Positions 9,529-50,539 of a DNA stretch of 64,000 nt are shown in pieces. The notes under the pieces are model-generated. The model was not told where the DNA came from. It saw nothing but the letters and a program-made list of their open reading frames with translations, and ran no database searches. The position numbers and the translations under genes were made by a program. This DNA is from Anthoceros angustus (Eukaryota; Plantae; Anthocerotophyta). Every line of letters starts with the position of its first letter. Within the stretch, counting starts at the first letter, position 1. The stretch covers positions 1,635,776 through 1,699,775 of the forward strand of contig VJWM01000019.1 in the NCBI GenBank assembly GCA_010909165.1, read 5' to 3'.

Positions 9529-10299
9529 TTGCTCAGCAACTTGGGTGCGCCTCTTGCCGTGCGGTTTCCTCTTGTATTATTTTTAAGCACTTATTAGTAA
9601 GAGTCCATGTGAGCCTTGCCCACAGCAAGGAAAGGCATCTTTGAGCTGGTTTGCAACAGGAGAAGGTTCCTAGTGACGAGCGAGCCGTGGCCCCCAAACG
9701 GTTGTAACGCCGCATAGTCCTCCAAGAAGCATTCTCCAAGATGCAGTCAGTCCTGACGTCGCTGTGGGATGCAACGGCCTGTGATGCACTGCAACTAAAG
9801 CCACTGCGGATCCGGGAGGCTAAACATGAGGCTAGCAAGCACTCAGATTCAGCAGCTTGTAGATTTCGATGTGTGAATTGTACCCTGGTATGTGTTCGAT
9901 GTCATATTTGGCTTCAATCTTTGTCATCTCGGTCTTCCTAACCATCAAACCTCTAAACTAGGTCTAGTTTTCCAAACGCCGTGAGGCGTCCTTTAGCGAT
10001 AAGCCCGAGCCCTTGTTCCGGTCAGCCAAAGCCCGAGCGCGTAACGAGACCGACAAGGCAAATCTCACTTGTTTTCAAGAACTATTAGAACAGGGTAAGA
10101 GCCCTTCCCACTAACTCTCGTGAGGGTTGAGGGTTTGTCTTCGTTATGATCACTAAAGTTTTTGCACGAAATTGATATACCTATTTTTGCATACACTCAG
10201 TGGTCTGGTAGATCTGTCACTATTGCATACCGAGATATGAGAAAACATGTGATCTCAACCATGGATTTCAATGCCACCTTGTTGTTGTGTGGTATTGGT

Positions 10300-11030
10300 T
10301 ATGGAATACCGATATGGTCACTCGGCATCGTGTGTGTGTGACTTTTTTTTTTGGGTGTACGCTACAGAAATATGCCATGACATCTTTCAGATATTTGCAT
10401 ACAATATACGTATAATACGTGCCACATCAGCTTCTGTAGCTTCATACGCGGGGCAAAAACTTTCTACGACACGATGATAGCCTGGTGTTCTGATTGTGTC
10501 ATGCATGCGCATGTTTTCTTGTTTAGGGTTTTAGGGTTCCGATCACCACACATACATGTTAAACAGGCAGCCAAGACACACATACTGCACCCCATAGGGG
10601 ACAGGCCTAGCAAACATTGCAGCCCTATATGCAGCCAGTGCCAAACACTGTAGCTTTGCACGTAAGGGCAAACGCACTCAGCCGCGTCGCAAACATAGAC
10701 GATGAGTGCAGCGCAAACGCAATTGCAAATGGTGGGCACAACGCAAACGCAACCGCTCACATACAGCACCCAGTGCCGCAATGGCGCGGCAACGCAAATG
10801 ACCCTAAACGCAACCCTAAACCCGAGAGAAGAAAGGTTTCTGTATATCGTGAAAGCTTTGTGTGCATCATGGGGTAGGTTGACGACATCGGTACACCGGG
10901 TGGCCGCAGCCCCGATCGATGTGGTCATGCATGACCTACCGAAATAGTTCCGCCGTATACGGCAAGACTGTTTCTTTCTGTCCACAACCCTAAAAAAATG
11001 TGGATGCCGATGATGGATCCAGATTCCATA
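10300..11030 (+). mobile_element. Non-autonomous TIR element copy A (~730 bp)
   Basis: Left end TATGGAATACCGATATGGTCA; degenerate right end ...GGATCCAGATTCCATA; homologous over its whole length to inverted copy B. Confidence 0.8.
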
Positions 11031-11376
11031 CACGGCGAAAGAGTGAAGGAGGGCGGGAATACTTACCAGCGAAATCTCAAAGGTATGGAATACCGATCTC
11101 GTCACGGAGCCGTTTAGGGTTTTTTTTTCGATGGTGACAAAAGAAGTTTTTCTGCCGCATATGGCGGGAAAACTTCTCATGTCACACACTTGACGACATC
11201 GGCCGTGGGCGCTTGCCCCCCTCGTGTCTCGATGTCGTCAAGTGGTGTGTGAAGATTCTTTTTAGGTTGTGACACACAAGGTTTTCTTTTTTAGGGCTGT
11301 CAGAACATGGACCTTCGCACATCCATCCTGCATGACCCCATCTGCCCGTCAGTTTGCCATAAACAAACCGTCACCA

Positions 11377-11777
11377 GGCCTTTGTGGCAGATAGCTTGGA
11401 GGAGCCATCCGCGCCTCGCGCCACTAGCTTTCGCAGCCATCCAGGCCTTTGTGGCAGATAGCCTGGAGGAGCCATCTACACCTCACATGCCTGGCTTTCG
11501 CAGCCATCCAGGCCTCGCGCGCCTGGCTTTCGCAGTCATCCAGGCCTTTGTGGCACATAGCCTGCAGCAGCCATCTGGGCCTCGCGCGATTGGCTTTTGC
11601 AGCCATCCAGGCCTTTGTGGCACATAGCCTACAGCAACCATCCGGGCCTCGGGCGACTGGCTTTCGCAGCCATCCAAGCCTTTGTGGCACATAGCCTGCA
11701 GGAGCCATTCGGGCCTCGCGCGACTGGCTTTCGCAGCCATCCAGGCCTTTGTGGCACATAGCCTACAGGAGCCATCC
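11377..11777. repeat. Minisatellite of ~6 copies of a 67-bp unit inside element C
   Basis: Unit GGCCTTTGTGGCACATAGCC...GCAGCCATCCA starts at 11377, 11444, 11511 (partial), 11543, 11610, 11677, 11744. Confidence 0.92.
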
Positions 11778-11965
11778 ATGTGCGGTACAAGCAAACCCTA
11801 AACATGAGTATGTGTGTTTGACAAAAACCCTAAATGGCAGAAAGAAAAGTAGATGACGAGATCGGAATACGAGGGGGCAAGTTGAGAGACAAAAAAACTT
11901 TGTGGTGCAAGGGGGCAAGTTGCGAGACAAAAAAAACTTTGTGGCGCCTACGGCCCATAGTGCGT

Positions 11966-12058
11966 TGATGTGGCCCGTATGTGATGAAGGAATCTTGAAG
12001 ATACCTGGGCATGATGTGGCCCGTATGTGATGAAGGAATCTTGAAGATGCCTGGGCAT
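11966..12058. repeat. 46-bp tandem duplication inside element C
   Basis: TGATGTGGCCCGTATGTGATGAAGGAATCTTGAAGAT(A/G)CCTGGGCA at 11966 and 12012. Confidence 0.9.
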
Positions 12059-12216
12059 CTTCAAGATTAATACTGGAGAAAAAAAACTTGTCACAGAGAC
12101 CCTGCCTCGTGACGAGATCGGTATTCCATACAAAGGCCAGGTGCGTTCCAACACCTAATCGAGGAAAAGTAAAAACCACACCGTTTTTTTGTTTCATCTC
12201 TATCGTTACCAATATT

Positions 12217-12974
12217 TATGGAATACCGATCTGGTCATGCGGCATCTACATTTTTTTAGGGTTGTGGACAGAAAGAAATATTCCCGCCGCATACGGCGGA
12301 ACTATTTCCGTATGTCACGCATGACCACATCGGTTGGGGCTGTGGCCACCCGGTGTACCGATGTCGTCAACCTACCCCATGATGCACACAAAGCTTTCAC
12401 GATACTTAGAAACTTTTCTTCTCTTGGGTTTAGGGTTGTGTTTAGGCAACTTTTCTTCTCTTGGGTTTAGGGTTGTGTTTAGGGTCATTTGCATTGCCGC
12501 GCCATTGCAGCACTGGGCGCCGTACATGAGCGGTTGCATTTGCGCTGCGCTTACCGTTTGCAATTGCATTTGCACTACACTCATCGTTTGTGTTTGCGGC
12601 GCGGTTGAGTGCGTTTGCCCTTATGTGCAAGGTTGCAATGTTTGGCACTGGCTGCATATGGGGCTGTAACGTTTCCTAGGCCTGTTCCCTATGGGGGTGC
12701 AGTATGTGTGCCTTGGCTGCCTGTTTAACATATATGCGTGGTGATCGGAACCCTAAAACCCTAAACATGTGCATGATACAATCGGAACACCAAGCTATCA
12801 TCGTATCCTAGAAAGTTTTTACCCCGCGTATGAACCTACAGAAGCTGATGTGGTACGTATTATATGTATATTGTATGCAAGTATCTGAAAGATGCCGTAG
12901 CATATTTCTGTAGCGTACATCCAAAAAAACAGTCACACGCACACGATGCCGAGTGACCAGATCGCTATTCCATA
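12217..12974 (-). mobile_element. Non-autonomous TIR element copy B (~760 bp), inverted relative to A
   Basis: Ends TATGGAATACCGATCTGGTCA and TGACCAGATCGCTATTCCATA; reverse complement aligns with 10300-11030. Confidence 0.85.
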
Positions 12975-13178
12975 GCCGTGACGGTGCTACGAAAAGTGTT
13001 TTGTTTTTTTGGCTTATGCAGAAATTTATAATGGTAAAGGTTTTATTGGATCTTCGGCTTCTTGTTTATCCACGATTGTGTAGCACCGAAGACTAGGTCT
13101 GTGCATTTAACAGCTTTGCCCGTAACGGGGGTCTACGCTGGTCGGGACTGGGGTGAAGAAGCAATCAGTCTTGTGGCG

Positions 13179-15049
13179 ATGGTGATGGACTCGCTCTTTG
13201 CGGGCCTCCCGCCCCCGTCGGGTCCGCAGGAAACCCCGGCAGAGCCTTTGGAGTCCTCATCGTCCGTTGTATCCAATGTGACGCATATCGAGCCCGTGCC
13301 TGCGGTGAAATCGGCCTTAGCAGCTTCTGGGAGCAAACGAGGTGCCAAGGATGTGGAGCTAGAAGGTGGTTTCTAGGTCGTCGTCTTCTCTCTGTTCCTG
13401 TTATTTTGTCTTGTGTCTGGAGTAAGAATGGAGAACCTTGGTAATCGCAGGTGAAAAAAGGGTTCGGTTCAGGACCACCGTTGACGCCAGCGCAGAGCAG
13501 GTTTTAAGTGCCATGCACAAAATTGCTGTACATATCAGTAATCCTTCCAAGTTCAACAAGGCTTCAAAGCTGGCTGTGCAACTGCTGGAGGGAGGCAGCG
13601 TAACGAGTGAATCAGCGGAGCCTTTTTTTGGCATTCTGAAGGCGGCCATGGCGCCGCCCTCTCGAGCAACAGAGGCCTCTACCCGGGCAGATTACCTGGC
13701 TCTGTTCGAAGCTGTCCAAGAGCAGCTTGAGGTGAGCTTATGGACTTACTTCCTCTTAATTTCTTACCTGGTTGCCAGTTCCTTTTGCTCGTTCAGAGCG
13801 TTTTTCTTTGGTGTCCGTTGTCTGACTTGACGTGGATGGTTTCAGTGCTTCAGTGCTTCTCAGCAAGCCCAAGTGGACGTGTGGCTTATCTGGGTACAGG
13901 TGGGCAACGATTTGAAAACCGACGATTCTTTCGTGGTAATAATCCTATGGCCTCCACTTGTTTATGCACCTGTATTTATTGACTTGTTGCGTGGTCCAGC
14001 TCAGTACGTTGTGTTGGTGGGGCTTGGATGGTGGGTTTGGCTTTGTATCGCCGGTCAAGGATGCATCTCTAACACCTCAGATAGTCTTGTTTGCATCCTA
14101 GTCCAGCATGGGACTGAACGACAATTATAAGGTGCCATGGCTTCCATGGATGGTCCATTTGGTGAGGGCTTGCTTGACTAGCTCCATCACTGGATTGGCA
14201 GCTCGGGGCCAACTTTGTGTGTAAGTCTGAAGTCCTCTCTGTTTGTAAATGTATTATGGACATATCCACACAGCTCTTTCAGAGTTGGGTGCTGAAAGTG
14301 GACTGTTCGTTGGGTGTTTGCCTGTGGTGTTTTTGCGAAGGAGCCATGCTTCTTCTGATGTCACAGATGTGATGTGTTGCAGTTCTCGAAAGCAGCTGGA
14401 CGTTTGAGGCAGGCTATTGATGCACTCCCAGATGCAACAGAGGAGGACTTGGAGGTCACCAGTGTTCCTGACACGAAGGCACCTCCAACTTGCAGTGATG
14501 TAGAAGTTCCAGAGGGGGCCACTGGGGAAGCTGATCCATTCGGCTTGAATGCTTTTCTGCCAAAACTATCGAAGAAAGAGGAAAGGTTGAAGAGGAAGAA
14601 GGATGAAGAAGCTGCAGCAAGGAAGGCTTCTGAGGATGCCGGAAGACTACTAGGAGAACGCAGGGAAGCGTTACTAGGTTGCTTGAAGGTTGCTGCCGAC
14701 CGTTACAAATTGCCATGGTAGGACCTTGACTGCTTGCTTCAGGTGGTTCTGTTTTGCGTAGCAAATGACCCTGACTCCTGTTACTCTTTTCAGGGCTCAA
14801 ACGATTATCGACATCACAGTAAAGCACGCCAATGACAATCTTGTGAAGTTCACATCCTCTCAGAGAGCAATTGTTGAGGCGCTGTGGTCATCTGTCCGTG
14901 ACCAGCAGACGCGTCGAAGGCAAGGGAAGGTTGCCTCGGATATAACGCCCTTCGAAAGGCTTCAGGCAAAGTATGCTGTAGAAAAAATCAGCATTCGTAA
15001 GGCAGTTGGATCAGGTGGAGGGCGCTCTGCCGAGCAATGGCTTGGTTGA
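13179..15049 (+). CDS. Conserved plant protein of unknown function, multi-exon
   Basis: MDSLFAGLPPPS, KRVRFRTTVDAS, MHKIAVHISNPSKFNKASKLA, VGNDLKTDDSFV|FSKAAGRL, EADPFGL, FERLQAKY...IRKAVGSGGGRSAEQWLG*; frames join at GT-AG introns. Confidence 0.85.
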
Positions 15050-32900: not shown

Positions 32901-34064
32901 TCTCCAAGATATATGCAGGTAGTCATTCCACTTTTCCTGGCGCCTGTGACTACACATCCTTAGCATCACTTCGCATATTTAATTTGCTTTCTCCACATGA
33001 CCTTCAGTCTCTGGATGATAAGCGGATGTTTTTTAACCCTGACATGGCATCCTTGATGGCAGCATGCTCACACTGTATTTTGGGTATTTAAGTCTGGGGG
33101 AGTTGAGAGGTCCGCTTGACTGTGCCCTCTCTCTGCTGCCTTGGGTTTGAGATGTGGAATGTGATGTCTTATCTTCACTTGGACAGATGATTGTTACGAG
33201 TAATCCTACCTACTATTAAGGGAGACAACACCATAATATTTGAACCGGCGGAATATACATCAAGCGGCTTTATGCATGAATATACGCTGAACCGGGTTGT
33301 GGATGGTCACTAAATCGATGTTCATGTATGTAGTCGCGGATAATGTGTTCAAAATTATGGTCAAAATCACATTCTACTTCAAATTTACAAGGAGCTCCAG
33401 TAAAGGGTCGTGGGGACATTCCCTGTGGGGTTTGCAATGATTTAGCACCGACTTCACACTCCCTTTGTGCTGGGATCCGAAACCACAGTGTTACAATATA
33501 TTGTCTTATATCAAGGGAATGGAAGCCACTTTTGCATCCGGGTTCACATTTACGGTGGCAAGGTATGGAAAATGTGCGGTTCCTCTATGGTAGAAAGGTG
33601 AGTAACGCAGAACGCGATGGGCGCATGCCGCGCCATCGCACACCTTGGGCCCTTAGCCATTCCACAGCACCAAACAGTTCAACATGGCCTTTTGATATCC
33701 GTGTGAGCGGAAAAATCTCTGTAGTGTACCATGTTCTTGTGAACCCTCAACAAAACCACAATTTGGCATATCGGCTCGGAAAGGGCTGCCAAGTTTCACG
33801 GAAACATTGGGTTGGCGCCACCATTAAACGAATCCCACTAACAGAGCCATGGCAGCCCGGTGACAATGGAAGGGGCCACTAGGAATAGACGACAAAATGT
33901 GGTGCGGAAGGAGTGCGGCATGCCATCGCAAAGGGTGTTACAAAGGGTTGCGCCATAAGTTCTTAGGAGCGGACCATGATCGGAATATATTTTGCCGTTG
34001 CTTATTCACTCCTCACCGACTCGAGACCGTCGGGTTCTCCATGCCCAAGACACCGTCATCCCCA

Positions 34065-37000
34065 TCATCCTCGTCCACCCGAGGGAGTGCAGGTTGAAGA
34101 TGGGGACGGAGGGCACTTAACTTCTCTTTGATAGCTTTTTATCCACAGCATGATGTTTCCTAGAAGTGAGATTGAACCCATAGTACAATGACTCTTATGG
34201 ACAAACAACTTCAATGTTGGGAGGCTTCCATGCTTTTGCACCTTTGTTGGTAGGAGGTAGTTCTCTGTCCTCCGGGTCCTAACAAAGTATTCTCCCCATA
34301 CTTGCCCTCGTATGCATCTGTGCTCGGTTCGCCACCTGCACCAGAAGTAGGGGTCATCGGTCATGTGCACACTCAAGACCTTTGCAACCCAGAATGCCTG
34401 TGAGTGTCTCACAAGGTGACAATAAACATACCTTTTTATCTCCATGATGTCACCATTCATCCGCTCGACCTCTTGTTCCCGTCTTTCCACACTCGTAAGC
34501 TCCCAAGTACATGTCCGTTGGAGGCACGCCTCGCAATAAGGCTTGTCCAATATAGCCTCCTCCGAACTGCAGTGGTACAAGTGCATCTGCTGCAGATCTG
34601 TCATACCACTTCCTGTCTTTTCGCATACAAAGGCCGATGTTATTGTCCACAATAGTTGCGATCTCCTCTTGATCCTCCAGTCACTCCACCACTCCTCCTC
34701 ACCGTTAGATATGTGTTGGCTTTTGCAAACCCTTTCTTAAGTGGTCTACTCCATCCGTCGAGCTTCCATCAACGCCTTTCTTGTCCTTGGCCTCAGAGCT
34801 AGCAGGTTGTAGGTCCAATCTCGATTTGGAATAAAAGACAAGAACTCCATCTTCTTGCTTCCCATAACGGTGAGGTCGAATCTTTTACTCCGAATAGCAG
34901 TTACTTTACCCCTGCGACTTTTCCTCCCGCGTGATTTTGAACCGGTGTTGGTATGATAGATTGTTTAGCTTGCGAACCGCAGCTTTAAACTTTAGCACTT
35001 TCCTTTTTCAAAGGCCGAGACGAACGGAAGTGGAACCTCGGTCGACCTTCACTGGTTTGGCGTGAAAGCCTTGCTCAATATATCCCGCATGACGGAAGAG
35101 TTTTGCCTCTTTGTGCTTCAAATGTTTGGAAAACACGAGAACATTTGGTCCACTGGTCATGTGTGTGACCTACAAGAAGAAAGCCCACCTTCACTTTTTC
35201 AAAGTCCCCACTCCACGAGCATATTCGGATAAGCAAAGCGATTGATTCTTGTTCTCCGACATGTGTTGTCCAGTTGCAAATATAGAACCTTGGGAAGTAA
35301 GCCAACATATGTATGTATCACATCTTGGATAATGCATATGGTTAAATTAGCATCATTCCGCAAATTTGCGTAGTGCAGATACGCCCTGGACTTGAACGTG
35401 TGATTGTGGATCATACACCCCACCACATGGACAGTAACACGGCAGTCTTCCTTTAGCTCCTTAGGCCATCTAAGTATATGCGGTAAGGATGTTTTTTTCT
35501 GATCCATGCCATCGATACATAACAACATGTACTTGTGAGGCTCGGTGTATCCTTTCGTTCGATGTTTTGTCAACTTCTTCCGCTCCTCCATAAGCTTTAT
35601 GCGATGTTTGTTCAACGCGTCCCGATATATATCGCCTTCAACCAAACATGTCGTGTCCATCCATGAAATATAACGTCATCGCTAACGGGACCAACCAACG
35701 GAGTTCGACATAACCCGTAGGGGCAAGGGGCAATAGCATGATGGCAACCCTCGGAAGGGTCATGCCCCAACAACCTAGGGATCCACCGTTGTATGGCCCA
35801 GCGGTCCTATCCCATCGTAAGGCGGGCGCCCGCCCCTCCCTACCGCCTCAATTAGGGATGTGGCATCGCGCCTCCCAAGCTCCTTTAGGGTTTAGGGTTC
35901 GCATGTTGCCGCCTCCTCTCCCCATTGCACCCCTCACCCATGAGGGGCATCTGCTCCTCCTCCCACAACACATGAGGGCGCATGCCGCGTCCAACCCGGC
36001 CCCGCCCCCGGGTGCAATGTGGCATGCGCCTTCCCTACCTCCTTTAGGGTTTAGGTCCCCGGCATGCCGCGCCTCCTCCTCTCCCCACTCGGCGTTCACC
36101 GCCTTCATCTGCGGGGCCGAACCGGTTGTGCCTCGACCAAGGTTCAACCTCCACCATCACAACGCCCACCGTTAGATATCGGATGGCCTCACTTCTAACC
36201 TTTCACCCTGTTTATACCATGCCGAAAAAGCGGTGTGGAGCGATGAGCTTACCTTGATCCGTCTGCGATCCAAAGGTTCAATGTTGAACTTTAGACCGCA
36301 AAGAGAACATGTTGAAAACCGATTGGATTTGGGTATCTTCACGCTTGAAGTTCTCGCTCCCATAGTCTCGTAAAGTAAGCATACGAAATATCTGGCCCTT
36401 TTGCTCCATGCCACATTTGTATTGTGTCCACACTTCTAGTTTGGTGAAAGTGTCGAAGATTGTAGACTTCAACATTAGGCGGCGCTCGCCACCGCCGCCT
36501 TCATCCGCAGAAAACCGCACCCGACCAAGGTTCAACCTCCACCACAACGCCCACCGTTAGATATCGGATGGCCTGCCACTTCTAACCTTTCACCTTTATA
36601 CCATGCCGAAAAACGGTGTGGAGCGATGAGCTTACCTTGATCCGTCTGCGATCCAAAGGTTCAATGTTGAACTTTAGACCGCAAAGAGAACATGTTGAAA
36701 ACCGATTGATTTGGGTATCTTCACGCGCTTGAAGTTCTCGCTCCCATAGTCTCGTAAAGTAAGCATACGAAATATACTGCAATTTTTGCTCCATGCCACA
36801 TTTGTATTGTGTCCACACTTCTAGTTTGGTGAAAGTGTCGAAGATTGTAGACTTCAACATTAGGCGCCGCCCGCTAATTGCGTAAATGTTGCATCCATCC
36901 ATGCAATAGCGCCCAATGCATGAGAGGATTTCACCCGGGCTTGGCTTGCTACAATCCCATGGTGAATTCAACGGACTCGCCTTCACCTCCTCGTACCTTT

Positions 37001-38019
37001 CCGACCCTATGCAATACACCCTTCAAGGATTTCGTGCAACACTTGATTGGAACCGGTGCCTTCGTGAAAGTATGACTTTGTCTTTGCCATTCAACCATGG
37101 TCGTCTTACAAGGGTCTCTAGGAATGTCTCCCCTCGGACCTTCCCAACCTAAGGAACCTTTGCCTCTTCCGAAACCTTCCTCGAAAGTCGTTGAATACAT
37201 ACTTTGTTGCAACACGGTTTCAAAATCCTCCACGTGTCCGTCTCGCCTTCTTCAAGGAGACACCACCAGCCGTGTTTGCAAACGAAACGCAAGCTCGCTC
37301 GCAGGCTGCAATGTCTCCGACATTGGCTTCGGATGATATGTACCGCAGCCTGTGAGGTGAACGGGAGGGTGGGGAACGTTGTCGCCGCCAAGAATATCGC
37401 CCCCGATGCACCCAAAACTCCACACGGAGGCGAGACCTCTCATTGCCCGCTGATGGCTCACTCGAGGGCGGGCATCTCCTCGCTCTTGGGCTAAGTTCCA
37501 TAGCCGCATACAAGTTCAAGTTCCGAGGCGTCGGTGGCACATAGGGGTGCACGAAGGTGATGAGTCCTTCTGAGCTGCAAGCATGTTTGCCGAATACAAG
37601 GTGAAGCTCATCGTCATCCAGCCGGTGATGATTACCATTGCAAACCCGCATGCCCGTGGCAGAGCAGTTGCTCGGAAAACATCCGGAACGCCGCGAATTA
37701 TGAAACATGAGCTTTTCAACAAGCCGAATGTGGTCGCTCCCTTCGCTCGCAAAGTTTGCAAGCGCTTACGGAAATAGATCGCTGGATGCTCCTTTTTGTG
37801 CATGCGTCGCTTGAGTGCAACATATGCGGACAAGTTCCTCCCATCCACTCGTCGATGCATGACACCCATCAGAACAACGACCCAGCGGATATAAACTACA
37901 TTGAAGGAGCAGCAATCGCTTGAGCTACCTCGTATCCTCATCGGTATGGGTGGAGTGGAGCATGGTGTGACGTTCACGTCTCGCGGAACGCGAACGAGCC
38001 ACCACAACCAGAGCAACAA
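34065..38019 (-). pseudogene. Decayed DDD-type transposase, Sola-like motif pattern, intron-containing
   Basis: YFTRLW...KIPKSNRFSTCSLC; H...EER; LCIDGMDQKKTSLP (~35499-35516); LYLQLDNTCR(E)NKN (~35245-35279); FLLVGHTHDQ(V)DQMFS (~35130-35190); frameshifts present; outer limits approximate. Confidence 0.8.
36130..36870. repeat. ~390-bp tandem duplication covering the Cys-motif exon of the transposase
   Basis: CAAGGTTCAACCTCCACC...TTCAACATTAGGCG present twice (~36138-36482 and ~36525-36865). Confidence 0.9.
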
Positions 38020-40559
38020 ACAAGGAGGTGGGCAAATTAGTATGAGACATCGGAGAACAAGCAGCTGGATGCCTTAGCGTCGAATATTTCCAGCATTCAC
38101 TGTTGGAGAAGATCTACCTATCAAGTGCCGGATCCGACGCCGCCGTCATTTGCTGGCGGACATAAATGTTGCGGCTTTTGCCGTTTGGTATCGGGAATCA
38201 TTTAATGCAGGCACAGAACACCACGCCTGGAAAACATGGGCACCCGTTTTACGTAAAACCATGGCAAAGCAAGCGGGTGCCGAAAATTAGGGTTCCCAGA
38301 AAAATGGACACCTGTCAAACGCGGTGGCGATTACCGTCTGCCGCAGTTTTTAACCCCGGCCCTGACCTTTTTAGGGCAGTTCAACCTTACCGTAATGGAG
38401 CGTCCATCACGGCCTACACCGTGTTCACCAAGCCTGTGAGTTGCGCTCCACTTAGCGTGACGTCGGGATTGCGCCGCCCACGCCGCTTGTTCGTGATTTT
38501 TGTCAATTGCACGCGCCTGACTTCGTGCGGTGCGCGCATCCCACCTCCTTTTGCATTGAGGGAGAAGGGGGTAGTCACCGTAATCAGCTGCGCACATGCG
38601 GTATGGCAAGTGGGCGGTAGAAGGAATTGGGGGCGAAGAAGAAACCCGCATGTAGACAAACCAAAACGTCGGAAGAGACCAAAAGGGAAGAAGGCGGGCT
38701 ACCACGCAAAGGAGCCGTGCGTGGGTGGATGCACACCAAAGTTCGAGCCGACCGGTGTTCCAATTCGGGAGCACATTCTTCAAAAGCTAATGCCGATGTA
38801 TCAGCCTGAACTCTCGGGATCCGGTCGGCAAAGGTGAGCCTAAGGGAGGCGGGAGGGAAATCGAGATGGCCAAGTCACAAAAGCCAGGCTGGATTCTAAT
38901 CCTCACCTTTTACGTTTGAGGCTGTTCAATTCTGCGACACACTAAGATTGATGAGACAATTCTCGGAGAAGGGACATGACCGCAGAGCTCAAGAAGACAA
39001 TGTGGTGTGGACACCCATGCTGAAATTGTGGATTTATGGCCACAATGGTGCTGCCGAATCGAGGGTGGGTATGTGGTCCGGCAACTTTGATAGAAGCGGA
39101 AGGAGATCCGGATATTCACTCTGGTGACTTCAAAGCCTTATGGGTTTGAAGCTTTGCCTGGAAGATTACAGTGTGTTCGTGTTGAGCATAGCTTGCACGA
39201 AAAAGAGCCACGAAGGCTATCTCTTAAATTCGGAAGCTCTTCGATAGGATTGTAAGTGTGTGTCTTTGGAAGTCATTGATTTTGAAGTTTTGGAACATCA
39301 TTGCATCCACTTAACACTTTTGGCACTTCTAACGCTTGGGCGTAATGCAAGGAATTTTTATCGATGCTTATGTGAGGTGATTACAAGTTCTATCATCAAT
39401 CACCGCCGGAGATGTCTTTAGAAGGACCAGTGGCTATCTCGACTATGAACCGGAAGGAGATGAGGACGAGGCGCAGTATGGACCCTCGTGAAGAGGATGG
39501 CCCTATGAGTCTTGGTCGCAGATGACGAAATGTCGGAGGAGGACGGATAAGAGGACTAGAATGGAATTTGCTTCCATAATGCTCGGGCATCCATGCCGGG
39601 TGCCCACTATTCCTTCCAATCCAGATGAGGACATGGGTCGCAAAGTGGGGAATTGCTGTGATACATGGAGTTGGGTACCCCAGTGCATCGGGTTTATATC
39701 GTGGTATGAAGGCATGGGAGGAAACACGATAATTTTTGAAGGGGGATATCGACTTCGGCCGAGACAAGACCCCCTTGTCACTTAAGAACACCTTACCTAG
39801 AACAAAGATATGTGCCCTACTTTGATAATGCACACACCCTTTCCGAGGTCATATCTTTGATAAAAGATGCACTTTCAAGTCTACACCCGAGAACCGGAGC
39901 ATGAGGGTGTGGGCCCGCTTATGCTTTAGTAGAATGCATAGAGGGCTGCCATTTTCATATGTTTATTACAACCGAAAACTTTTACTTTCAAGTGGTGGAA
40001 CACAATGAAAACAATCTGTACTAGCGGAGTCTCATTTAAGTGGTCGTGAGAACATTGCAACAAACAATCAAGGAGGAAGTGGTCATCAAGATCGACAATA
40101 GCCATTCAAGAGTGCGGCCCGGCGACTCATCCATGCGCCGAACCGAGTCACCACCGCCATATTCGAGGCGGTCCATATCCTCCGCCTCGAAGTTGTCGCT
40201 CTCTCCATTGCTTGCTCGTCTTCAATAGTATCATTCTTGGGCCCAGCCCGACGGTGTCGATCGCCACAAAGATCTAGGGTCTCACCTCATCCAAAAGGTC
40301 GCCACCGTGGTCTTCAACCTTCCGCACTCAATGCAACCACTTGGGCTTTAAGGCAATGCCAACGTCCTTAAAATGAACAAAGTTAGTTGCCCATGCGCCC
40401 ATGCAAGCATCCTTAAAATCAACAAAATTGAACTATTGAGGAGGCACGAGGTTTGAACACAAAACCTATTCGTTACTACACTTATTTCCCAAACACTAGA
40501 CCAACAGTCCATGGTTGAGATACTCTTGAGGCGCTAAATATTTATTTTCTGGAAGACAG

Positions 40560-40945
40560 CCTAGGAGGAGGGCGCCGGCCGGCCGGCGCCCATGGGTAGG
40601 GCAGGGTGTGCTAGGGGAGGGCGCCGGCCGGCCGGCGCCCATGGGCAAGGCATGGCGTGTTGGTGGGGGCGCCGGCCGGCCGGCCGGCCGGCCGGCCGGC
40701 CCATGGGTGGTGTGCTAGGGAGGGCGCCGGCCGGCGCCCATGGGCTGGTGGTGTGCTAGGGAGGGCGCCGGCCGGCCGCCCATGGGCGGTGGTGTTAGGG
40801 AGGGCCGGCCGGCGCCCATGGCGTGTGCTAGGGAGGGCGCCGGCCGGCCCATGGGTGGTGTTAGGGGAGGCGCCGGCCGGCCCATGGGCGGTGGTGGGAG
40901 GCGCCGGCCGGCGCCCATGAGCAGATGTTGGGAGGGCCGGCGCCT
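40560..40945. repeat. Very GC-rich tandem array built from GGAGGGCGCCGGCCGGCCGGCGCCCATGGG units
   Basis: About 8-9 variable-length copies visible directly. Confidence 0.9.
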
Positions 40946-41913
40946 CCCTTAGCACCATCCTACGGTGCATACGGGTGAAGCTAGGGGGACAAGAAGGAAC
41001 GTATCCTATCACCGATGGAAGGTGTGGCCCATTTGCGGAAGGGTTAAAAGATTTGCATCCATAGGTAGTTGAAGAGTATAAGTGGTGGGAAGCCTTGGAC
41101 CGGAAGGAGATTGCTATCGTGGAGAATAACATTGGGCTAGTGCTACAGTCATTCTTGGAAGTGGTTTTCACGTGCGTAAGTGGATCATACATGACCACTT
41201 CAAGTGCGGATGAAGCTTTGCTAGATGAGGCATTATTGAGGGACCTCCACGCGTGATATGTATTTGGGGCATATCAAAATGCGGAAGGCAACGGAAATGG
41301 CACGGATGAATGGGGACATAACGGAACCGAGAGGGATGTTTCGCGCGCGGCAATACGGACATGCATACCATTCTCGGATTGGGAGGTCATTGACGTGAAG
41401 CTAAACGCACCACGACCTCACTTTCTTATCCACTAGTATCGGACCGAGCACATAGATGCGTATGAAGGAGATATGTGCAGAACACATAGTCGCGGTGGTA
41501 ACCCATCGGTCCAATCTTGAGGAAAAAGGGAATAAGATCCATTACCTAAAAACATACAGAGGTATTTGTAGATGAAACATCATCATCTATTATGGGTTTG
41601 TGTTGAGCATACGGAAACATCATGTCGGTGGACAAAAAGCGATAAGGGATAAGCTCTGCGAGTTGCGTGGCTTCATACAACTGCGAGTGAAAGTGTCGCG
41701 AAGATAGTGATGACAATGGAGGAGAAATTTGGACCAAGTGATGACGATGGATTGAACTCGGGATGAGTGGCGAAATCTCGTTTTCGGGGTCCCGAGTTAA
41801 TGTTGTAAGTCCGGTTCTTGATGTTTACGTGTTAGGAAATACCACTGTCGTGGCTTTTGTGGTGTCATAACAAAACCACATTTCCATCCCAAAGCGAGTT
41901 CTGATCGTCTTGC

Positions 41914-44900
41914 GTGAGGCAGCCTTCCTCACCGTTCCTACTTTGCATTATTTCCCTAGGTTGGAGTTTGCGACCACCATTGGCCACAAACATTCTTTGG
42001 ATGGAAAGTAGTAATTTTGGTGACACCTTTTTGAATTGTTTTAATGCCTTCAAAGCTTTTTTAGGGCCCATCAAAACCCCTTCGAGATTATTTGCGGAAA
42101 ACCCCTTGAGATTATTAACCCCTTCAAAATTATTAGAGAGGAAGGCAAGGCCGTGCCGCCTTCTTCGCACAACCGCAGGAAGGCGGCATCCAAGTACTGG
42201 GATGCGGGGAGGCACCCAACTAGCCGTAACATCGGCCGGAACCAGCCGCCGCCCAGCACGCACGGAGGGAGGCGCCGGCATGCCGCCTCACGCTGGCCTT
42301 GGGACGAGGAGGGCGCCGGCATGCCGCGCCGGCCTTGGGACGAAGAGGGCGGCGCATGCCGGCGCGCCCGCCGCCTTGGGACGCAGAGGGAGGCGCCGGC
42401 CGGCGCCTCCCGGCCTTGGGGCCGCAGGCGCGGCATGCCGGCGCCTCCCGGCCTTGGGACGCAGAGGGAGGGCGCCGCATGCCGCGCCCGCCAGCCTTGG
42501 GACGCAGAGGGAGGGCGCGGCATGCCGCACCGCCAGCCTTGGGACGCAGAGGGAGGCGCCGCATGCCCGTGATGCTGCGATAGTGGAGGCGTGTCGGGAG
42601 TAGTGGGAAGCGCAAACGGAGTTCGACATATGCACCGGGTTTGGGGGTCAACAAATGTGGAGCCCGAAGAGATTTGAGAAGGAAGAAGGCAAGCGCAGAG
42701 GGCGTGACGACAACGACATCCCGACTATGCATGTCGCGGACGGGAGAGGCCGGAGGCCTCCATTCGTGATGAAGATTATTTATGAGGAATATCGGAGAGG
42801 CAAGATACCAAGAAAGTGGTTCGAAACTTGTTCTTGAAATTAGAGAATTTAAGGCCCATCCTTTCTTTCTCCGTGATGCAGCCTTCCTCACCGTTCCTAC
42901 TTTGCATCATTCCCTAGGTTGGAGTTTGCGACCACCATTGGCCACAAACATTCTTTGGATGGAAAAGTAGTAATATTCTACCTATATGCTAAGGGAATCC
43001 TAACTTTGTATTCTATTTTGCTTTTATGGATGCATGAGAGCACCCATCAAAACACACATGACCAACAACCACGTCCCAAAAAGAAATGAAAAAAGCCAAC
43101 GATGATATCGCTAAAGGAGTACCTAGTCTAAGAAAAAAAGAAAAGCTGATGTATAGGTGTTATATTTCTAATCCAATCATTTTATTTGTCTAGGGAATTG
43201 AGTTCATACTATATGCATTTTATGATCCACATCGAGTTTGAATCTTACAATTTTATTCTATTCTTTTCATAATATTTCATGTGTATAAGGAATTAAGTTT
43301 ATACTATATGCCTTTTGTTACCGTCGAGTAAATTTGGATCTTAGTTTTCGAGGTAAACTGATCATTTAGTACTATATATGTATTGTCTGGGGTACAAAAT
43401 ACTTAACTATTTTCTAAACTTGTCAAGCTTCCATCCCTTAGTTCTATTTGTATCTTGAGTTCAAAGATATGACGACCTATACTCTCTTGCTAGTTTTTAT
43501 TGCTTTGGCAATGGGCACCATGGTAGTGGATGGCAAGAATTTTGTTGAGCTCCAAGCATGTGGGCACTAAATCAAATTCACCGGATGCCCGACACTACGA
43601 GCAATACACCAACTTCCACTATCTCGAGTATGTATGAGATTTTCATTGTTTTGATTGTTGTTGGAAAAGTTTCCTAGTAATAATGCTAACTATAAGCGGA
43701 AGCATGTGTGAATTCTATAATTTATTTCTATGGTTATCATTTTCTTTTTATCTTTTAAGTAGAGTGATTTAAAATGATAAAAACTAATTCCAATGTATAT
43801 TTTTTGTTGCTTTGACAATGTTTGTTATTCTAGGAGTGAGTGGTTATTCAACTCCTCGTGGAAGATATGTTAGGACGTCTAACCATATTGAGTCAAATGT
43901 GTTATACTCCATGAATACAAAGATTTTCATCTTCTCTCAAGTATGTACCGTTGATAGTAGATCGTGTTGCATGATATATTTCTTGGAGCAAATCTACGTC
44001 TGTGCTTGGTGACTTGATGCTTGCTTGGTAGGGCGGGCTAATTTTGGTGACACCTTTTTGAATTGTTTTAATGCCTTCAAAGCTTTTTTAGGGCCCATCA
44101 AAACCCCTTCGAGATTATTTGCGGAAAACCCCTTGAGATTATTAACCCCTTCAAAATTATTAGAGAGGAAGGGCAAGGCCGTGCCGCCTTCTTCGCACAA
44201 CCGCAGGAAGGCGGCATCCAAGTACTGGGATGCGGGGAGGCACCCAACTAGCCGTAACATCGGCCGGAACCAGCCGCCGCCCAGCACGCACGGAGGGAGG
44301 CGCCGGCATGCCGCCTCACGCTGGCCTTGGGACGAGGAGGGCGCCGGCATGCCGCGCCCGGCCTTGGGACGAAGAGGGCGGCGCATGCCGGCGCGCCCGC
44401 CGCCTTGGGACGCAGAGGGAGGGCGCCGCATGCCGGGCGCCCGCCGCCTTGGGACGCAGAGGGAGGGCGCGGCATGCCGCGCCTCCCGGCCTTGGGACGC
44501 AGAGGGAGGGCGCCGGCATGCCGCGCCCGCCGCCTTGGGACGCAGAGGGAGGGCGCGGCATGCCGCACCGCCAGCCTTGGGACGCAGAGGGAGGCGCCGC
44601 ATGCCCGTGATGCTGCGATAGTGGAGGCGTATCGGAAGTAGTGGGAAGCGCAAACGGAGTTCGATATATGCATATTTGGGGTAAAAATAACAAATGTGGA
44701 GCCCGAAGAGATTTGAGAAGGAAGAAAGGCAAGCGCAGAGGGCGTGACGACAACGACATCCCGACTATGCATGTCGCGGACGGGAGAGGCCGGAGGCCTC
44801 CATTCGTGATGAAGATTATTTATGAGGAATATCGTAGAGGCAAGATACCAAGAAAGTGGTTCGAAACTTGTTCTTGAAATTAGAGAATTTAAGGCCCATC

Positions 44901-44914
44901 CTTTCTTTCTCCGT
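41914..44914. repeat. ~960-bp tandem duplication (41914-42873; second copy 42874-42974 + 44043-44914) containing ~40-bp GC-rich arrays
   Basis: Near-identical blocks; arrays of CCTTGGGACGCAGAGGGAGGGCGCCGCATGCCGC at ~42280-42570 and ~44315-44612. Confidence 0.9.
42975..44038. mobile_element. AT-rich ~1.06-kb insertion splitting the second copy of the duplication
   Basis: Uninterrupted copy reads GTAG-TAAT-TTTGG; interrupted copy has TAAT on both sides (42971-42974, 44039-44042); no TIRs recognised. Confidence 0.55.
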
Positions 44915-46850
44915 ATGCATGATTCGGATTGTGGATGAAGCTTGGACCAACTACAGCTCGAGTCATTTCGAAAGGTAGAGTGGAGGAAGGTGTCAGCTCT
45001 ACTATGCATGATTGACCCGGAGTGCGACATTCAATCTATAGATCGGATAAGTTTAGAGCCAAGAAGTATGTCATGGGAGTGCTCGTGGCAATCACACCTA
45101 TGCGATGAAGCATCCGGACATATCTCCATCAAGGCCGATACCAATGGATGGAAGCCCATGTGTATTGTGGGCTCACTTTACCGTAGATGAGGGTTCGCCA
45201 CCACCACAACACTATGTCGACAACGGCGGAAGATGAATTTCATTGAGCAAGTAAGGTACTTGCGAGATGAGTTGCATTGCAAAGAGAGATGGTGTCAATA
45301 TGAGCATGAACTGAAGTTCAACCTATAAGGTGCTAGGCTTGATAGATGATGATGAGGCCGAGAGGATGAGCGATAAGCAAAACAAGGTCCAATCGTACAA
45401 ATATCCTTTGCATCGCCAAACTTGAGGGGAGAGTGTGGGAAAATGTCGATAAGATCTCACGAAGTGGGAGGCCATGGAGTTGCCAGAACAAGCCAAACAT
45501 GTTGCCGCAGGAACTAGCAAGAAAAGCAAGGGGAAACGGAAGACTGCAGATGAGGCGAAGGCGGTGGACCAAAGTTTTGTGAAGCCAAAAGACATGCAAG
45601 GGAAGCCTTGGCGAAGTTTTCAGGGTATTCCACCGGGTGAGATGCCAAAAATGTTGATCGGTCACCGAGAAGGTCTGACAGTCTCATAGACCTCAATGGT
45701 ATGGCCAAAGGAGATCACTCTTCGGAAGAAACTACATGTGATCCAAGTGGCTATGGCGAAGCATCTAGGCTGCAATTCATTCGAGATGGTAAGGAAGGAG
45801 TACCGGTGCACTCAACGGATGAAGTCATTGCATTTTATCGCTTTCAAGGGAAGGTGAGTTTTCTTGTCTTAATAGAACTATTGGAGCGCCGGCATGCCGC
45901 CTCCTCCCTATTGTCCCCATAATCGACTTTCGCAACCTCACTTGTTTTGTGTTATTTTGCAGCAAGTTAAAGATGTTGAAGACCAAAAGCTACCGGAAGA
46001 TTTCCGTGCTTTTTATATTAGAGGTCCACACATGGAAAGGGCTGGAGGATGAGCAGAGGGCACTTGCGGACATGGACATGGAGGAAGGGCTGCAATCTTT
46101 CTGCCCAAAACAGAGGAGTTAGTGAAGTATCAAGTGGTGCGAGATGTGGCGTAAATGAGAGGGTTTCTTTGGGTCAAGTATACAACGCTGGTTATGGATG
46201 TCCCTAGAGATTCAACAAGGGAAGTATGATGTCAAACTTGAGCAAGAAATGGCAAACATATTTCATTCCTTCCATGACATGACAATGTGCGACGAGATCG
46301 TAATGATAGTAATGCATGGTGTGGAAGAGCCGCATATTGTCGTGAGAGTATGAGGAAGTGGTGTGTGTGGAGGCATGGTCTCATTTGTTTGGGACAAAAC
46401 TAATATGCACAATGACCAAGGAGGCTTTGACACCGTGGAGTACATCACGGGTGGGGTGTGACCGCACGAGCAAGAAGACAAAGGTGTCCATCTGCCGAAT
46501 ACCTTGCGTGGCTCTTTCAATAATGGGCGCGGTTATTGCACACGTGGTGAAGAAGTTATTATACATGTCATTGGACAAAATTTGGTTGTTTCCGTGTCGA
46601 GGCCACGGGTCTAATGATGAAGTTGATCAAGAACTTCTCCAGAGAAGGAGATTGGATATTAGATGCATGTGCGAGTGGAACAACGACATTAGCGGCACTC
46701 CTTTGTGGCCGAAATTGCATTCTGTGGAGGTTGACAAACGCTGAGTTCATTCCGCAAAGGATTCATGGCTATGAAGTTTTTCTGGGGCAGAGGAGGAGGT
46801 TGACCCATGAGCCACACCGAGGCCCCACCCAATTCAGGCAAAAGAATTGA
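44612..46850 (+). pseudogene. Decayed ParB-like domain + beta-class DNA amino-methyltransferase (N4-cytosine/N6-adenine) gene
   Basis: KKYVMG..GNHTYA...VYCGLT....HHN (45061-45225); intron 45854-45962; LVMDVP(Y) at 46197 with a 2-nt deletion, followed by IQQGKYDV; FVWDKTN at 46384; FPC..(K)..TGLMMKLIKNFSREGDWILDACASGTTTLAALLCGRNCI at 46590-46722. Confidence 0.8.
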
Positions 46851-46855
46851 GCTTG

Positions 46856-47790
46856 TCCGAGAAGGATGCATCCTGTGCCAGTAGTCCCACTTGGGTTGAG
46901 CAGATGAAAGAGAAGACGGAGATCTTATAGATGATCGCCAAGAAACCCTGCATTGTGGCATCCCGACTATTTGGAGAAGAGCAAGGAGGATGCGGTCGAT
47001 ATCGCGAATGCTATGGTCGAAAACGACAATTTCGAGGATCCCGAGGATGCTCGACTCAAGGACGGAAGTTGTGTTAGATAGCGTGTCGGGACAATGCCCT
47101 CCGGAGCACAGCCTCAGAATCCTCGGTAGGGAAGTGAGTCTAGTTTAGTTTTGAAAGTTCCATAACCGCATGGTTAGAACTAAGACAGGCGCCGGCATGC
47201 GGCATGGTCCTTCTTTACTATGAGTGACATTGTTATTCGTTTTGACAAGGATGACTTCATTGCCTGCAAAATATCCGTAGACCTCGTTTCACACCTATAA
47301 GACATTAAAGTACTGCACGAGGTCCGAGAAGGATGCATCCCAGGTAGTCCCACTTGGGTTGAGCAGATGAAAGAGAAGACTGGAGATCTTATAGATGATC
47401 GCCAAGAAACCCCGCATTGTGGCATCCCGACTATTTGGAGAAGAGCAAGGAGGATGCGGTCGATATCGGAAATGCTATGGTCGAAAACGACAATTTCGAG
47501 GATCCCGAGGATGCTCGACTCAAGGACGGAAGTTGTGTTAGATAGCGTGTCGGGACAATGCCCTCCGAGCCACGCCCTCAAGCCGAGATCCCCCTCTAGG
47601 GAAGTGAGTCTAGTTTAGTTTTGAAAGTTCCATAACCGCATGGTTAGAATTAAGATGCGCCGCATGCCGCCCGTGCTCCTTCTTTACTATGAGTGACATT
47701 GTTATTCGCTTTGACAAGGATGACTTCGCTGACGCTGCAAAATATCCGTAGACCTCGTTTCACACCTATAAGACATCTGCCGTCACGCAG
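46856..47790. repeat. ~467-bp tandem duplication near the right end of the large transposon
   Basis: GTCCGAGAAGGATGCATCC...CACACCTATAAGACAT at ~46856 and ~47323. Confidence 0.9.
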
Positions 47791-50539
47791 AGAGGTCCAG
47801 AATGCACCAACATACCCACATTCGTGTGAAAGCATCCACAAAACGGGGATGCGCTAACCCTGAAGCACTAAACTTGCAGACTACCGGACTGGATGGGGAA
47901 CCCGAATTTGGTCCCGGGTTTTCGAAAGCGGGTTCGTATATTCCGCCGGTTCAAATATTATGGTGTTAGACCGATTTTGTGCAAGCTCACGTAAAGTCGC
48001 GGCCTCGATCTGGGGCCTCGACGTGCCCAATCAATTTTTTAACGGAAACGTTGGGGTAAAAAGAGGAGAGAAAATTACAAATTTGGAATTATGTTGAAAA
48101 ATTTTCGTTACAAGAGGGTAGATTGTAGACAACTAGATGAAAATATTTCACCATTCAAGTCAAAATTAGAACACGAGGGTAAGATCTTAACGGCCAAGTG
48201 AAAGAGAAATCCAACACACCATGGGGTAAACAAAAATTTGCTAGTAAATCCCACCACAATCATTAATCTGGCAATAAAACATTTTATGTTAAGTACTATT
48301 CATGTGAATCCAGGATATACAAAAAACCAACAAAGAAATACATTCTTTGCAGAGTTTCTTGTATATCTAGAATGATTGTCCTCAAAATTTATTTCTTTTG
48401 CAGGTATTGAGAACTTTGCTTCAGCGCAGGGTTAGTTCTCGGATAGTGCTTCTTTTCGCCCCCTTGACTGATCTGTTGTTCTGTCTGTTATGTAGTAATT
48501 TGTATCCGTGTCTCTGTCTTGTTTGTTTTGCTCGGTTTGTGTTTACTGTTAAGATTCGTGGTCCCCGATTCGCTTGCTCTCTTGTCTGTTGTACTTTCTC
48601 GAGAGATGTGTTTTATCTGACAGTCATTCTGTCTCTCTTCGCTTATACCGGGTTGTGGTTTGCTGATATCGCAGGCCGCTGAAAGCCGGGCACCTTCAGC
48701 GCAAGTCGTCCTCTGATATCACTTCTTATTTACGCCCCCTGTATGTATCTCTGTTTGGACGTAGTTAGTTGCATCTTTGTCTTGTCCGTAGTTAGTTGCA
48801 TCTTTGTCTTGTCCGTTTTGCTGACCTGTTCGTTCTGTTGTGTGATTCTTGTCTACATCTGGTCTATTGCATGTCCAGTTCTGCATCTCTCTTTTTTGTT
48901 GGGCCAATTAACTTGCTCAAGAGCTCTATTTGTTGCTCTTTCAATCTGTCATATTGCATTATACCTGGGCAGTTTCCTTTGTTGTCTACTGTTCTTTCAT
49001 TACACGTTAAGTAAAAAGATTGTTCTTGAGTAGTCTACTCGGTCTCCTAAGACCTGGAGACACACCCCTCTTTTTAGAGATAGAGGTCGAAATGACCAAA
49101 TTTTACATTTGAAATCAAATCAAATCGTGATTTCGTGGGTTTTTCCAGACACAAGGGTCAAAAAACACACATCGCAGATAACCTGTGGTTTTCATAACAC
49201 CATTTCTAGCTTTATCATGCCATTTGATCTTGCAAATAATGGTCCCTTTGGATCAAGTTTGAAAATACCGCTTTCAGCACTTTCAAGGACACTTTTCCAA
49301 AATCGGTTAGTCTTTCAAAATCGCCAAGTTTGTGACGCTTTTTGAATATATGTACTAAGGAGCTATGTAGGAGCTATGTTATCTGTTTGTTGACTCGCAG
49401 ATCGAAAAATCTAACATCTCCATACCTTCAACATAGTGTCAGGTCGTGATGGTTCTGCCAGGTCCTTGCCGTTTGATTCTATCTATGTTTGCATGTGTTC
49501 TGCCTCAATTGTATGGATCTGGGTGGCTGCCGTTCTTATCTATGTGTGGTGTAATGCTGGATTGTCAGTTCATGGCTTCCAAGCTTGAGTCCTGACTGTC
49601 TCATTGTTACTGCCAATTGGTTGCTTACTTTTCTTTGTCAGCAAGGATGTTGTCTCTGTTGTGAAACTTGGCTCAAGCGATGCTGACTCTGGACTTCCTG
49701 GATTATTTATTTCATTGCAGATATACGGTTTGCCGGCACGATTTCCTTCTGCTTTTGTGGTGTTCCACGAGTTCCTTCCAACTGTAAGTTTCACGTCGTT
49801 TTAGTTGCTGTTTAGTCTTCATGTGACCTCTATTGTTATTATCATGGTACATAGGTTTGTATTAACCACATTACATGTTTTTGTAGAAAATTGAACTACC
49901 TGGAATTTTCTGCCATCTTCAGGGTCAAAAGGTGTCCTCATAGTTAGGTTTGGTTTAGAGTCTACCTTTAATGCTTCCTCATGATGTTTACTTTGTCAGT
50001 TGCAACCTCAATTGAGGTAAAGCCGTTGTTGTTGTTGTCTATGGGCTAAGTCCCAATTGTCTGGAGGGTCTTTCGAATATGCTGTGGGTTTAAATGGATT
50101 ATGATAGAGGCATGCAGCTTGTCCAGTTCTCTTGCATATGTTAGTTTTTTAGTTGTTAAACAATTATTCTTGTTAATTTCCTGTTTTGCTCGCGTTTTCA
50201 GACTTGTTCTTGGTGTTGTATTTCCAAAAATCTTTGTTGAACAGAAGGGAATCCTATCTAGAGTTTTTCTAGATTTTAGGAGTTGGCTATGTGTATTCTG
50301 TGGAAAAGAAAGCGGGAGGGAATGGAAATCAAAAGAACGCTCAATTTCAAGTGGCTTTCATTGTCACATATTTTGTCCGGATCGTCATTACCATTGCCTA
50401 GATCATCTGATCATCAATTTTTAGACCTTCCAGCACGTTTCAAGTGGGATTTCTTCAATTCAAGTAAGTTCATATGGCCGGTTAGCTTTCAAATTGTCTG
50501 TTTATATATGATCTCACCCCTCTTCCCTCGACAATATTA

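Follow-up and report, generated by a model that had tools for sequence, protein, structure and literature searches.

Transposons that carry a DNA methyltransferase gene joined to a ParB-like domain have been described in algae. In Ectocarpus, Sola1-1_Ec32, a 21.5-kb Sola-1 element, encodes a protein of 1104 amino acids (aa) with a ParB-like part and an N4-cytosine/N6-adenine (N4C/N6A) DNA methyltransferase part; the gene lies on the strand opposite the transposase, and such proteins possibly act on their own element by binding and modifying it (Genome Biol 2025, PMC12477816). That survey refers to earlier cases from green and red algae, including Petroll et al. 2025 (PMC12477816). In red algae, the accessory genes PAG2 and PAG3 of Plavaka elements encode ParB-like domains as well as a DNA methylase (Bostrychia preprint 10.1101/2025.02.11.637652; Curr Biol 2025), and the tandem inverted-repeat arrays of these elements beside the ParB gene were proposed as ParB binding sites (10.1101/2025.02.11.637652). 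Here we analyse a broken gene of this kind, at 44612-46850, in a 64,000-nt stretch of the Anthoceros angustus genome (contig VJWM01000019.1, positions 1,635,776 to 1,699,775). This whole stretch is called the window, and positions are given in its own numbering.

It is highly probable that the gene is a pseudogene of an accessory gene in a 14.7-kb DNA transposon with terminal inverted repeats (TIRs), spanning 33227-47967; intact copies of the gene may have a self-binding role. Intact family members encode one protein of ~700 aa with a probably ParB-like N-terminus, a helical middle and a C-terminal methyltransferase fold, and their gene is divergent from the transposase gene. The window copy makes no protein and is inert, without functional consequence.

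By its description, Sola1-1_Ec32 resembles the window element in being a giant TIR DNA transposon with a fusion of ParB-like and amino-methyltransferase domains opposite the transposase. The window element differs in its land-plant-type host, with the nearest relatives in the liverwort Riccia, the ~700-aa length of its intact relatives, the motif IV sequence DVPY and the death of this copy. As in Plavaka, palindrome arrays adjoin the ParB-like gene in the window and in related elements of the liverwort Riccia sorocarpa. In Plavaka, however, two genes of the Plavaka/EnSpm superfamily combine a methylase with SET and ParB with a 2-oxoglutarate (2OG) oxygenase, whereas here there is one protein. 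The pairing of gene and transposon has already been reported from brown, red and green algae, so that the novelty implied by a preliminary description of this DNA was overstated; the land-plant-type host is newly added. We found no published report on DUF7869, the family of the transposase, or on ParB-methylase transposons in bryophytes or ferns, and the pairing is undescribed for land plants in the literature found.

The gene remnant and its intact relatives

Every motif listed in the preliminary description was recovered at its position by three-frame translation of 44600-47200 and a coordinate check. The motifs follow the permuted beta-class order on the plus strand, with motif IV (46194-46207) before the W.K.N block (46384-46446) and S-adenosylmethionine (SAM) motif I (46611-46721) (Table 1). 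The catalytic motif had been read there as D-V-P-(Y). D-V-P is present, but TAG occupies the position of the catalytic Tyr in the window copy. The Riccia counterpart of this region is ADVPYGFNFKGC, and YGFNFKGC stands in Riccia where the window reads RFNKGS after the TAG. The SAM loop of the window, DACA-SGTT, is one residue shorter than DLCSGSGTT of the relatives, and the window copy has no recognisable (Y)QK(S) block.

Table 1. Features of the element and of its methyltransferase gene remnant, with the palindromes of three elements
Feature	Position	Strand	Remarks
Left target-site duplication AGAC	33223-33226		Direct reading
Left TIR, 32 nt (AACACCATAATATT...)	33227-33258	+	100% complementary to 47936-47967
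Decayed transposase gene, candidate DDE/D type	34065-38019	-	DUF7869 core 35075-35660
Transposase-region tandem duplication	36134-36489 / 36522-36874	-	95%
Palindrome array GGGCGCCGGCCGGCGCCC	40561-40941		Tandem, periods 33-66
First copy of tandemly duplicated unit	41913-42977	+	Palindrome array 42265-42567 and first ~250 bp of gene
Palindrome array GGCGCCGGCATGCCGGCGCC	44293-44605		~7.5 units of 41-43 bp, immediately upstream of gene
Exon 1 remnant	44612-45853	+	ParB-like region, then helical region ending ..AFYRFQGK; colinear with Riccia P0030/P0048/P0022
ParB-like region	~44870-45330	+	VLEIREFKAHP, WMKLGPTTARVISKG, LLCMIDPE, YVMG, GNHT, VYCGL, HHHN
YVMG; GNHT; VYCGL; HHHN	45067-45078; 45087-45098; 45160-45174; 45199-45210	+	Three-frame translation, coordinate check
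Intron	45854-45962	+	109 nt, GT-AG, phase 0, GTGAGT start, TTGCAG end
Exon 2 remnant	45963-46850	+	Linker (QVKDVEDQKLPEDF..) and methyltransferase domain 46176-46741
Motif IV region	46194-46225	+	M-D-V-P 46194-46205 (frame 1), 1-nt slip, TAG 46205-46207, RFNKGS 46208-46225
GKYD	46219-46230	+	Translation check
W.K.N block (VW.K.N ... EY) FVWDKTNMHNDQGGFDTVEYI	46384-46446	+	FVWDKTN 46384-46404, VEYI 46435-46446
SAM-binding block LMMKLIKNFSREGDWILDACA-SGTT..GRNCI	46611-46741	+	LMMKLIKNFSREGDWILDACASGTT 46611-46685, GRNCI 46707-46721, then SVEVDKR
3' tandem duplication	46855-47776	+	46855-47305 vs 47322-47776, 91%
Right TIR	47936-47967	-	100% complementary to 33227-33258
Right target-site duplication AGAC	47968-47971		Direct reading; identical to left
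Window element palindrome GGCGCCGGCATGCCGGCGCC			Arrays between genes and one intron copy
Riccia L002 palindrome GCAACTCATGCG-N-CGCATGAGTTGC	Region 5532-12000		At least 12 copies, two in intron
Riccia L001 palindrome GACGTCCATGAGGTTCATGGACGTC	Region 6740-14558		Arrays

The motifs are spread across all three frames, so that the gene is badly broken. A strict alignment of the methyltransferase domain requires frame changes near 46523, 46583 and 46721, the last a -1 frameshift ahead of SVEVDKR, and passes through in-frame stops at 46351 and 46459. At least five additional frame changes are needed across the ParB-like part, and numerous frame changes and stops interrupt the exon 1 remnant. With the TAG at the Tyr position and the short SAM loop, these lesions bear out the earlier statement that this copy is disrupted.

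The canonical spliceosomal intron that had been proposed to link the upstream region to the methyltransferase part was also upheld by the sequence. A pyrimidine tract precedes its 3' end, and it joins frame 0 (..AFYRFQGK) to frame 1 (QVKDVEDQKLPEDF..). Its position matches the annotated intron of the gene in Riccia locus L002 (P0007, between ..SFDLML and KERSSS..). One copy of the element palindrome lies within the window intron, at 45886-45903; the Riccia L002 intron likewise contains the palindrome of its own element.

The 56-aa SAM piece was used to look for relatives among 1.8 billion representatives (12 matches), and word-index protein searches followed. The family is multi-copy in Riccia sorocarpa, with many paralogues across several chromosomes. 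Three word-index protein searches returned almost exclusively Riccia paralogues and no full-length relative from other plants. Riccia P0022 is intact, a complete colinear protein of 693 aa in which the motifs join as the preliminary description had envisaged. Its N-terminal order is ..WRFDCLGGNHS..IVYIGLT..AHDDN.. (ParB-like), followed by the helical region; its C-terminal order is ..KLAIADVPYGFNFKGC.., ..GVWIKTNCKNAGGPR..QEYFSVGFWS.., ..NVYQKSQ.., ..DWVLDLCSGSGTTLVCALLAGRNCIAVEKDERQ. In the longer gene models P0030 and P0048, the ParB-like domain begins farther upstream (..IPIEQ..GPYQIRA..), and the window retains remnants that match this start, VLEIREFKAHP at 44870 and WMKLGPTTARVISKG at 44932. 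In Riccia L002, the gene (9590-11815, plus strand) is divergent from a transposase gene (5164-7684, minus strand) homologous to that of the window.

For the C-terminal piece 46614-46847, Pfam PF01555 gave E=3.9e-5 and 24.2 bits, under the gathering score of 26.7 because the piece is a fragment that covers only profile positions 172-208; P0022 gave 45.6 bits. A eukaryote-only family profile matched the same piece with E=3.4e-14 among the 2768 six-frame pieces of the window. This piece was the sole match when ten stop-free pieces were compared with Pfam. The C-terminal block was likewise the sole match when the window was searched by BLAST and phmmer with the Riccia protein, and when the family hidden Markov model (HMM) was run over the six-frame pieces. 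Because these searches were blind beyond the C-terminal block, we used a custom frameshift-tolerant protein-to-DNA aligner with shuffled-query controls. A low frameshift cost made the aligner over-fit, and stricter runs were relied on instead.

In the frameshift-tolerant alignment with P0022, the whole methyltransferase domain scored 126, where shuffled queries gave 32.4 +/- 4.3 (z=21.7). Its N-terminal half, from motif IV to the EY block and excluding the SAM block, scored 56 and 51 (z=5.8 and 4.9); both scores exceeded every one of 60 shuffles (maxima 45 and 43). The helical middle scored 61, with a shuffle maximum of 54 (z=3.5), and the ParB-like part reached z=2.6-4.6. The parts of the window run colinear with the intact Riccia relatives. 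The statistical weight rests in the methyltransferase domain, and the upstream parts are weaker. Chance occurrence of the motifs was rejected by the profile E-values and the shuffle z-scores. In brief, the earlier claim of a transposon-borne, beta-class amino-methyltransferase gene with an upstream domain stands, given the Pfam match, the z-score of the whole domain, the TIRs and the transposase.

The DNA run of the same organism contained 287 short contigs matching 45064-46925 at 85-100% identity. Many of them show single-base insertions or deletions relative to the window copy, for example at 46010, 46243 and 46365. Most have G at 46208 (Arg to Gly), giving Gly as in the DVPYG of Riccia. The number of contigs and their base differences indicate a multi-copy family in which the window copy has private lesions.

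The public annotation of the Riccia L002 gene, P0007, splices away the catalytic part (ADVPY...GFPE), though a 408-aa open reading frame (ORF), 10589-11815, is continuous there. Mis-annotation has probably left several of the Riccia models in this family as fragments. P0002 (from a Joint Genome Institute, JGI, metagenome), P0012 and P0010 (Logan/Sequence Read Archive, SRA) form a second related subfamily, with ..WTIGY.., ..NPYQKP.. and DLCAGTGST. Its members have long acidic or coiled tails and come from short contigs; these contigs look eukaryotic, which suggests that the family is wider than Riccia.

Fold and possible activity of the family protein

The family profile matched CcrM (6pbd) over the whole domain with E=4.8e-9, placing A-D-V-P-Y on A-D-P-P-Y and VWvKtN, and with it the W.K.N block of the window, on VWRKSN. 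RsrI (3e-7), HpyAVI (1e-5) and MboIIA (1.5e-4) were also matched, and the rotifer N4C enzyme gave 0.05. A match to PHROG 67, 'DNA methyltransferase', had E=1.4e-18. An AlphaFold model of P0022, built from an alignment that included bacterial methylases, had a mean predicted local distance difference test (pLDDT) score of 60.9, and of 60-90 across the methyltransferase domain. Foldseek matched this model to CcrM, M.BceJIV, M1.HpyAVI, MboIIA, rotifer N4CMT and PvuII (E 1e-10 to 1e-8, probability 1.00, template modelling (TM) scores by target 0.5-0.76). As modelled, intact family members carry a C-terminal beta-class (N6/N4-type) DNA amino-methyltransferase fold.

The family shares with CcrM (6pbd), RsrI (1eg2), M1.HpyAVI (5hek) and MboIIA (1g60) the placing of motif IV before motif I, VW.K.N, (Q)K(P/S), GSGTT and the fold. 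It differs from the bacterial and phage beta-class enzymes in its 20-25% identity to them, DVPY for DPPY, eukaryotic introns and an N-terminal extension with ParB-like and helical parts. Rotifer N4CMT (8s9m/8s9n/8s9o; Foldseek E ~4e-9) and Marchantia MpDN4MT1a/b are likewise eukaryotic proteins with a PF01555-type fold of prokaryotic origin. The family profile, however, is much farther from the rotifer enzyme than from CcrM (0.05 vs 4.8e-9). MpDN4MT1a/b carries TSPPY, according to the preprint. The S-type catalytic motif (T)SPPY of eukaryotic N4C writers is absent from the window family, which has DVP(Y), and by the catalytic motif alone the family is a different lineage from MpDN4MT1a/b. The suggestion that such transposons are a reservoir for Marchantia-type N4C enzymes was therefore not borne out, given TSPPY in MpDN4MT1 and a profile that favours CcrM and RsrI over the rotifer enzyme.

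Judged from its motifs, the family protein is not supported as a writer of N4-methylcytosine (4mC) or N6-methyladenine (6mA). 6mA would be favoured over 4mC, though not decisively, by the D-type catalytic motif and by the closer match of the family to N6-adenine enzymes.

The N-terminal region was placed by the ESM Atlas among ParB_N clusters (0.90-0.92), DUF6551 and DUF3723 by features, and among ParB_N, DndB, ddrB-ParB and RepB clusters by predicted structure (TM 0.5-0.7). The strand-helix pattern and the order ..Y.(I/M)GGNH.., ..(I/V)Y.GLT.., ..HD(D)N.. are consistent with a ParB/sulfiredoxin (Srx) core. AlphaFold models of this part were of low confidence, with pLDDT 40-55 in P0022 and 40.6 for the region alone, which was unusable. 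The region is probably ParB-like, in agreement with the algal papers on their proteins.

The helical region (P0022 residues 190-290; ~45560-45853 in the window) is the best-modelled part of the protein, with pLDDT 85-92. It could be a DNA-binding module.

The enclosing transposon and the explanations of the locus

Perfect 32-bp ends and identical flanking duplications bound the element that encloses the methyltransferase gene (Table 1). Two pieces of the transposase ORF match Pfam PF25273 (DUF7869) with E=5.7e-14 and 1.4e-4. In tblastx the transposase remnant matches the transposase genes that adjoin the Riccia methyltransferase genes, and the ESM Atlas groups it with DUF7869 proteins that have RNase-H-like transposase folds. 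From these resemblances the transposase is a candidate for the Sola1-like DDE/D type; Sola elements make 4-bp target-site duplications. It is encoded on the minus strand and the methyltransferase gene on the plus strand, both within the TIRs.

The 18-mer core of the element palindrome, with up to three mismatches, has 9 matches in the window where 0.02 are expected, and all 9 are within the element. The window element and the two Riccia elements have three wholly different palindrome families, with CATG common to all three, at the centre of the palindrome in the window and in both arms in Riccia. This sharing of CATG may be chance. Two palindrome families occur in L001, which suggests two adjacent or nested elements there.

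As we would explain these arrangements, the N-terminal domain of intact copies would bind the palindromes of its own element, as ParB binds parS, and this binding would bring the methyltransferase domain onto the element DNA. There the domain might mark the DNA, N6-adenine being likelier than N4-cytosine, or might merely clamp it. As a result, transposition would be controlled or the element would escape silencing by its host. The perfect ends of a dead copy suggest mobilisation in trans, or decay after a recent insertion.

Several observations weigh against this explanation. Catalysis is unproven because motif IV has Val in place of the first Pro of (D/S/N)-P-P-(Y/F/W), reading D-V-P-Y in the Riccia relatives and D-V-P followed by the stop in the window. 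Neither the window pieces nor the Riccia N-terminal regions had a match to ParB_N or its clan (PF02195) in Pfam, PHROGs or PDB profiles. The arginine of GxxR (box II) is absent, the family having GGNHS(A/L)A and the window GNHT. The ParB-likeness comes from the ESM Atlas neighbours alone, and the ParB/sulfiredoxin core of the preliminary description, which agrees with those ParB_N- and DndB-type neighbours, is weakly supported given the missing profile matches and the unusable AlphaFold models. TIRs around the Riccia L002 copy were not found within the fetched 21.8 kb. One RNA run of the same sample gave zero matches to the gene.

The motif IV change can also be read to mean that the protein has lost catalysis throughout the family. 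The fold would then be only a DNA- or SAM-binding module of a ParB-like clamp, which pairs or condenses palindrome arrays for transposition with no methylation. DVPY is found at motif IV in every Riccia copy that retains this part, QKS is found in place of QKP, and Pfam detects only the C-terminal third of the domain, in the intact proteins too. Set against this, Riccia subfamilies with no more than 40-49% identity to one another have all kept the motif IV Asp and Tyr, VW.K.N, EY and GSGTT, which is consistent with a maintained active site. We consider general loss of catalysis rather unlikely. At the other extreme, a land-plant element might encode a complete 'ParB/parS plus methylase' system of self-marking, in which each ParB-like domain recognises its own palindrome and the DVPY enzyme deposits N6-methyladenine or 4mC. 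This would be quite improbable on the present comparison. If it were true, a mark other than 5-methylcytosine (5mC) on the arrays would control transposition or block host silencing, and domesticated copies could supply host genes. Three points are useful for tests of self-marking: the retained DVPY motif, the conserved intron position and the element-specific arrays, whose palindromes are candidates for binding or target sites.

A methyltransferase gene or pseudogene of the host, not itself mobile, could have been captured by an unrelated transposon or could lie inside one by accident. We regard this as very unlikely: the liverwort shows the same gene in the same orientation with an adjoining homologous transposase and palindrome arrays, there are many Riccia paralogues on several chromosomes, the gene is multi-copy in the DNA run of the source organism, and perfect TIRs enclose it. 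Recent bacterial or phage contamination, or a fresh horizontal transfer of a prokaryotic ParB-methylase, is scarcely credible. The fold is indeed typical of prokaryotes and phages, and methylases from phages and plasmids give the best outside matches, but these are just 24-27% identical (E ~1e-4 to 4e-6, tblastn), the position of the GT-AG intron is shared with Riccia, and the gene is in a eukaryotic TIR element. Contamination was rejected on these three grounds. No recent prokaryotic donor was visible in the phage and plasmid collections, and the three plasmid methylase genes inspected were without a ParB fusion. The preferred explanation remains the pseudogene of an accessory gene of the transposon.

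Internal rearrangements of the element

Two stretches of the element, 42012-42880 and 44039-44919, are 95.5% identical, each a ~0.9-kb unit made of the GGCGCCGGCATGCCGGCGCC array and the gene start; 41913-42018 duplicates 42872-42977. With the other internal tandem duplications (Table 1), they indicate that the element is internally rearranged despite its perfect 32-bp ends. A reading of the GC-rich arrays as CACTA subterminal repeats was rejected, since the arrays consist of palindromes and lie inside the element, not at its ends.

Inside the second duplicated unit, 42978-44038 (~1.06 kb) is AT-richer and unmatched elsewhere in the element. This stretch may have been inserted later.

In one contig of the DNA run, 44487 is followed directly by 45905; the 1417 bp left out lie between a palindrome in the array upstream of the gene and the one in the intron. 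This junction suggests that another genomic copy has lost the ParB-like exon through recombination between palindromes.

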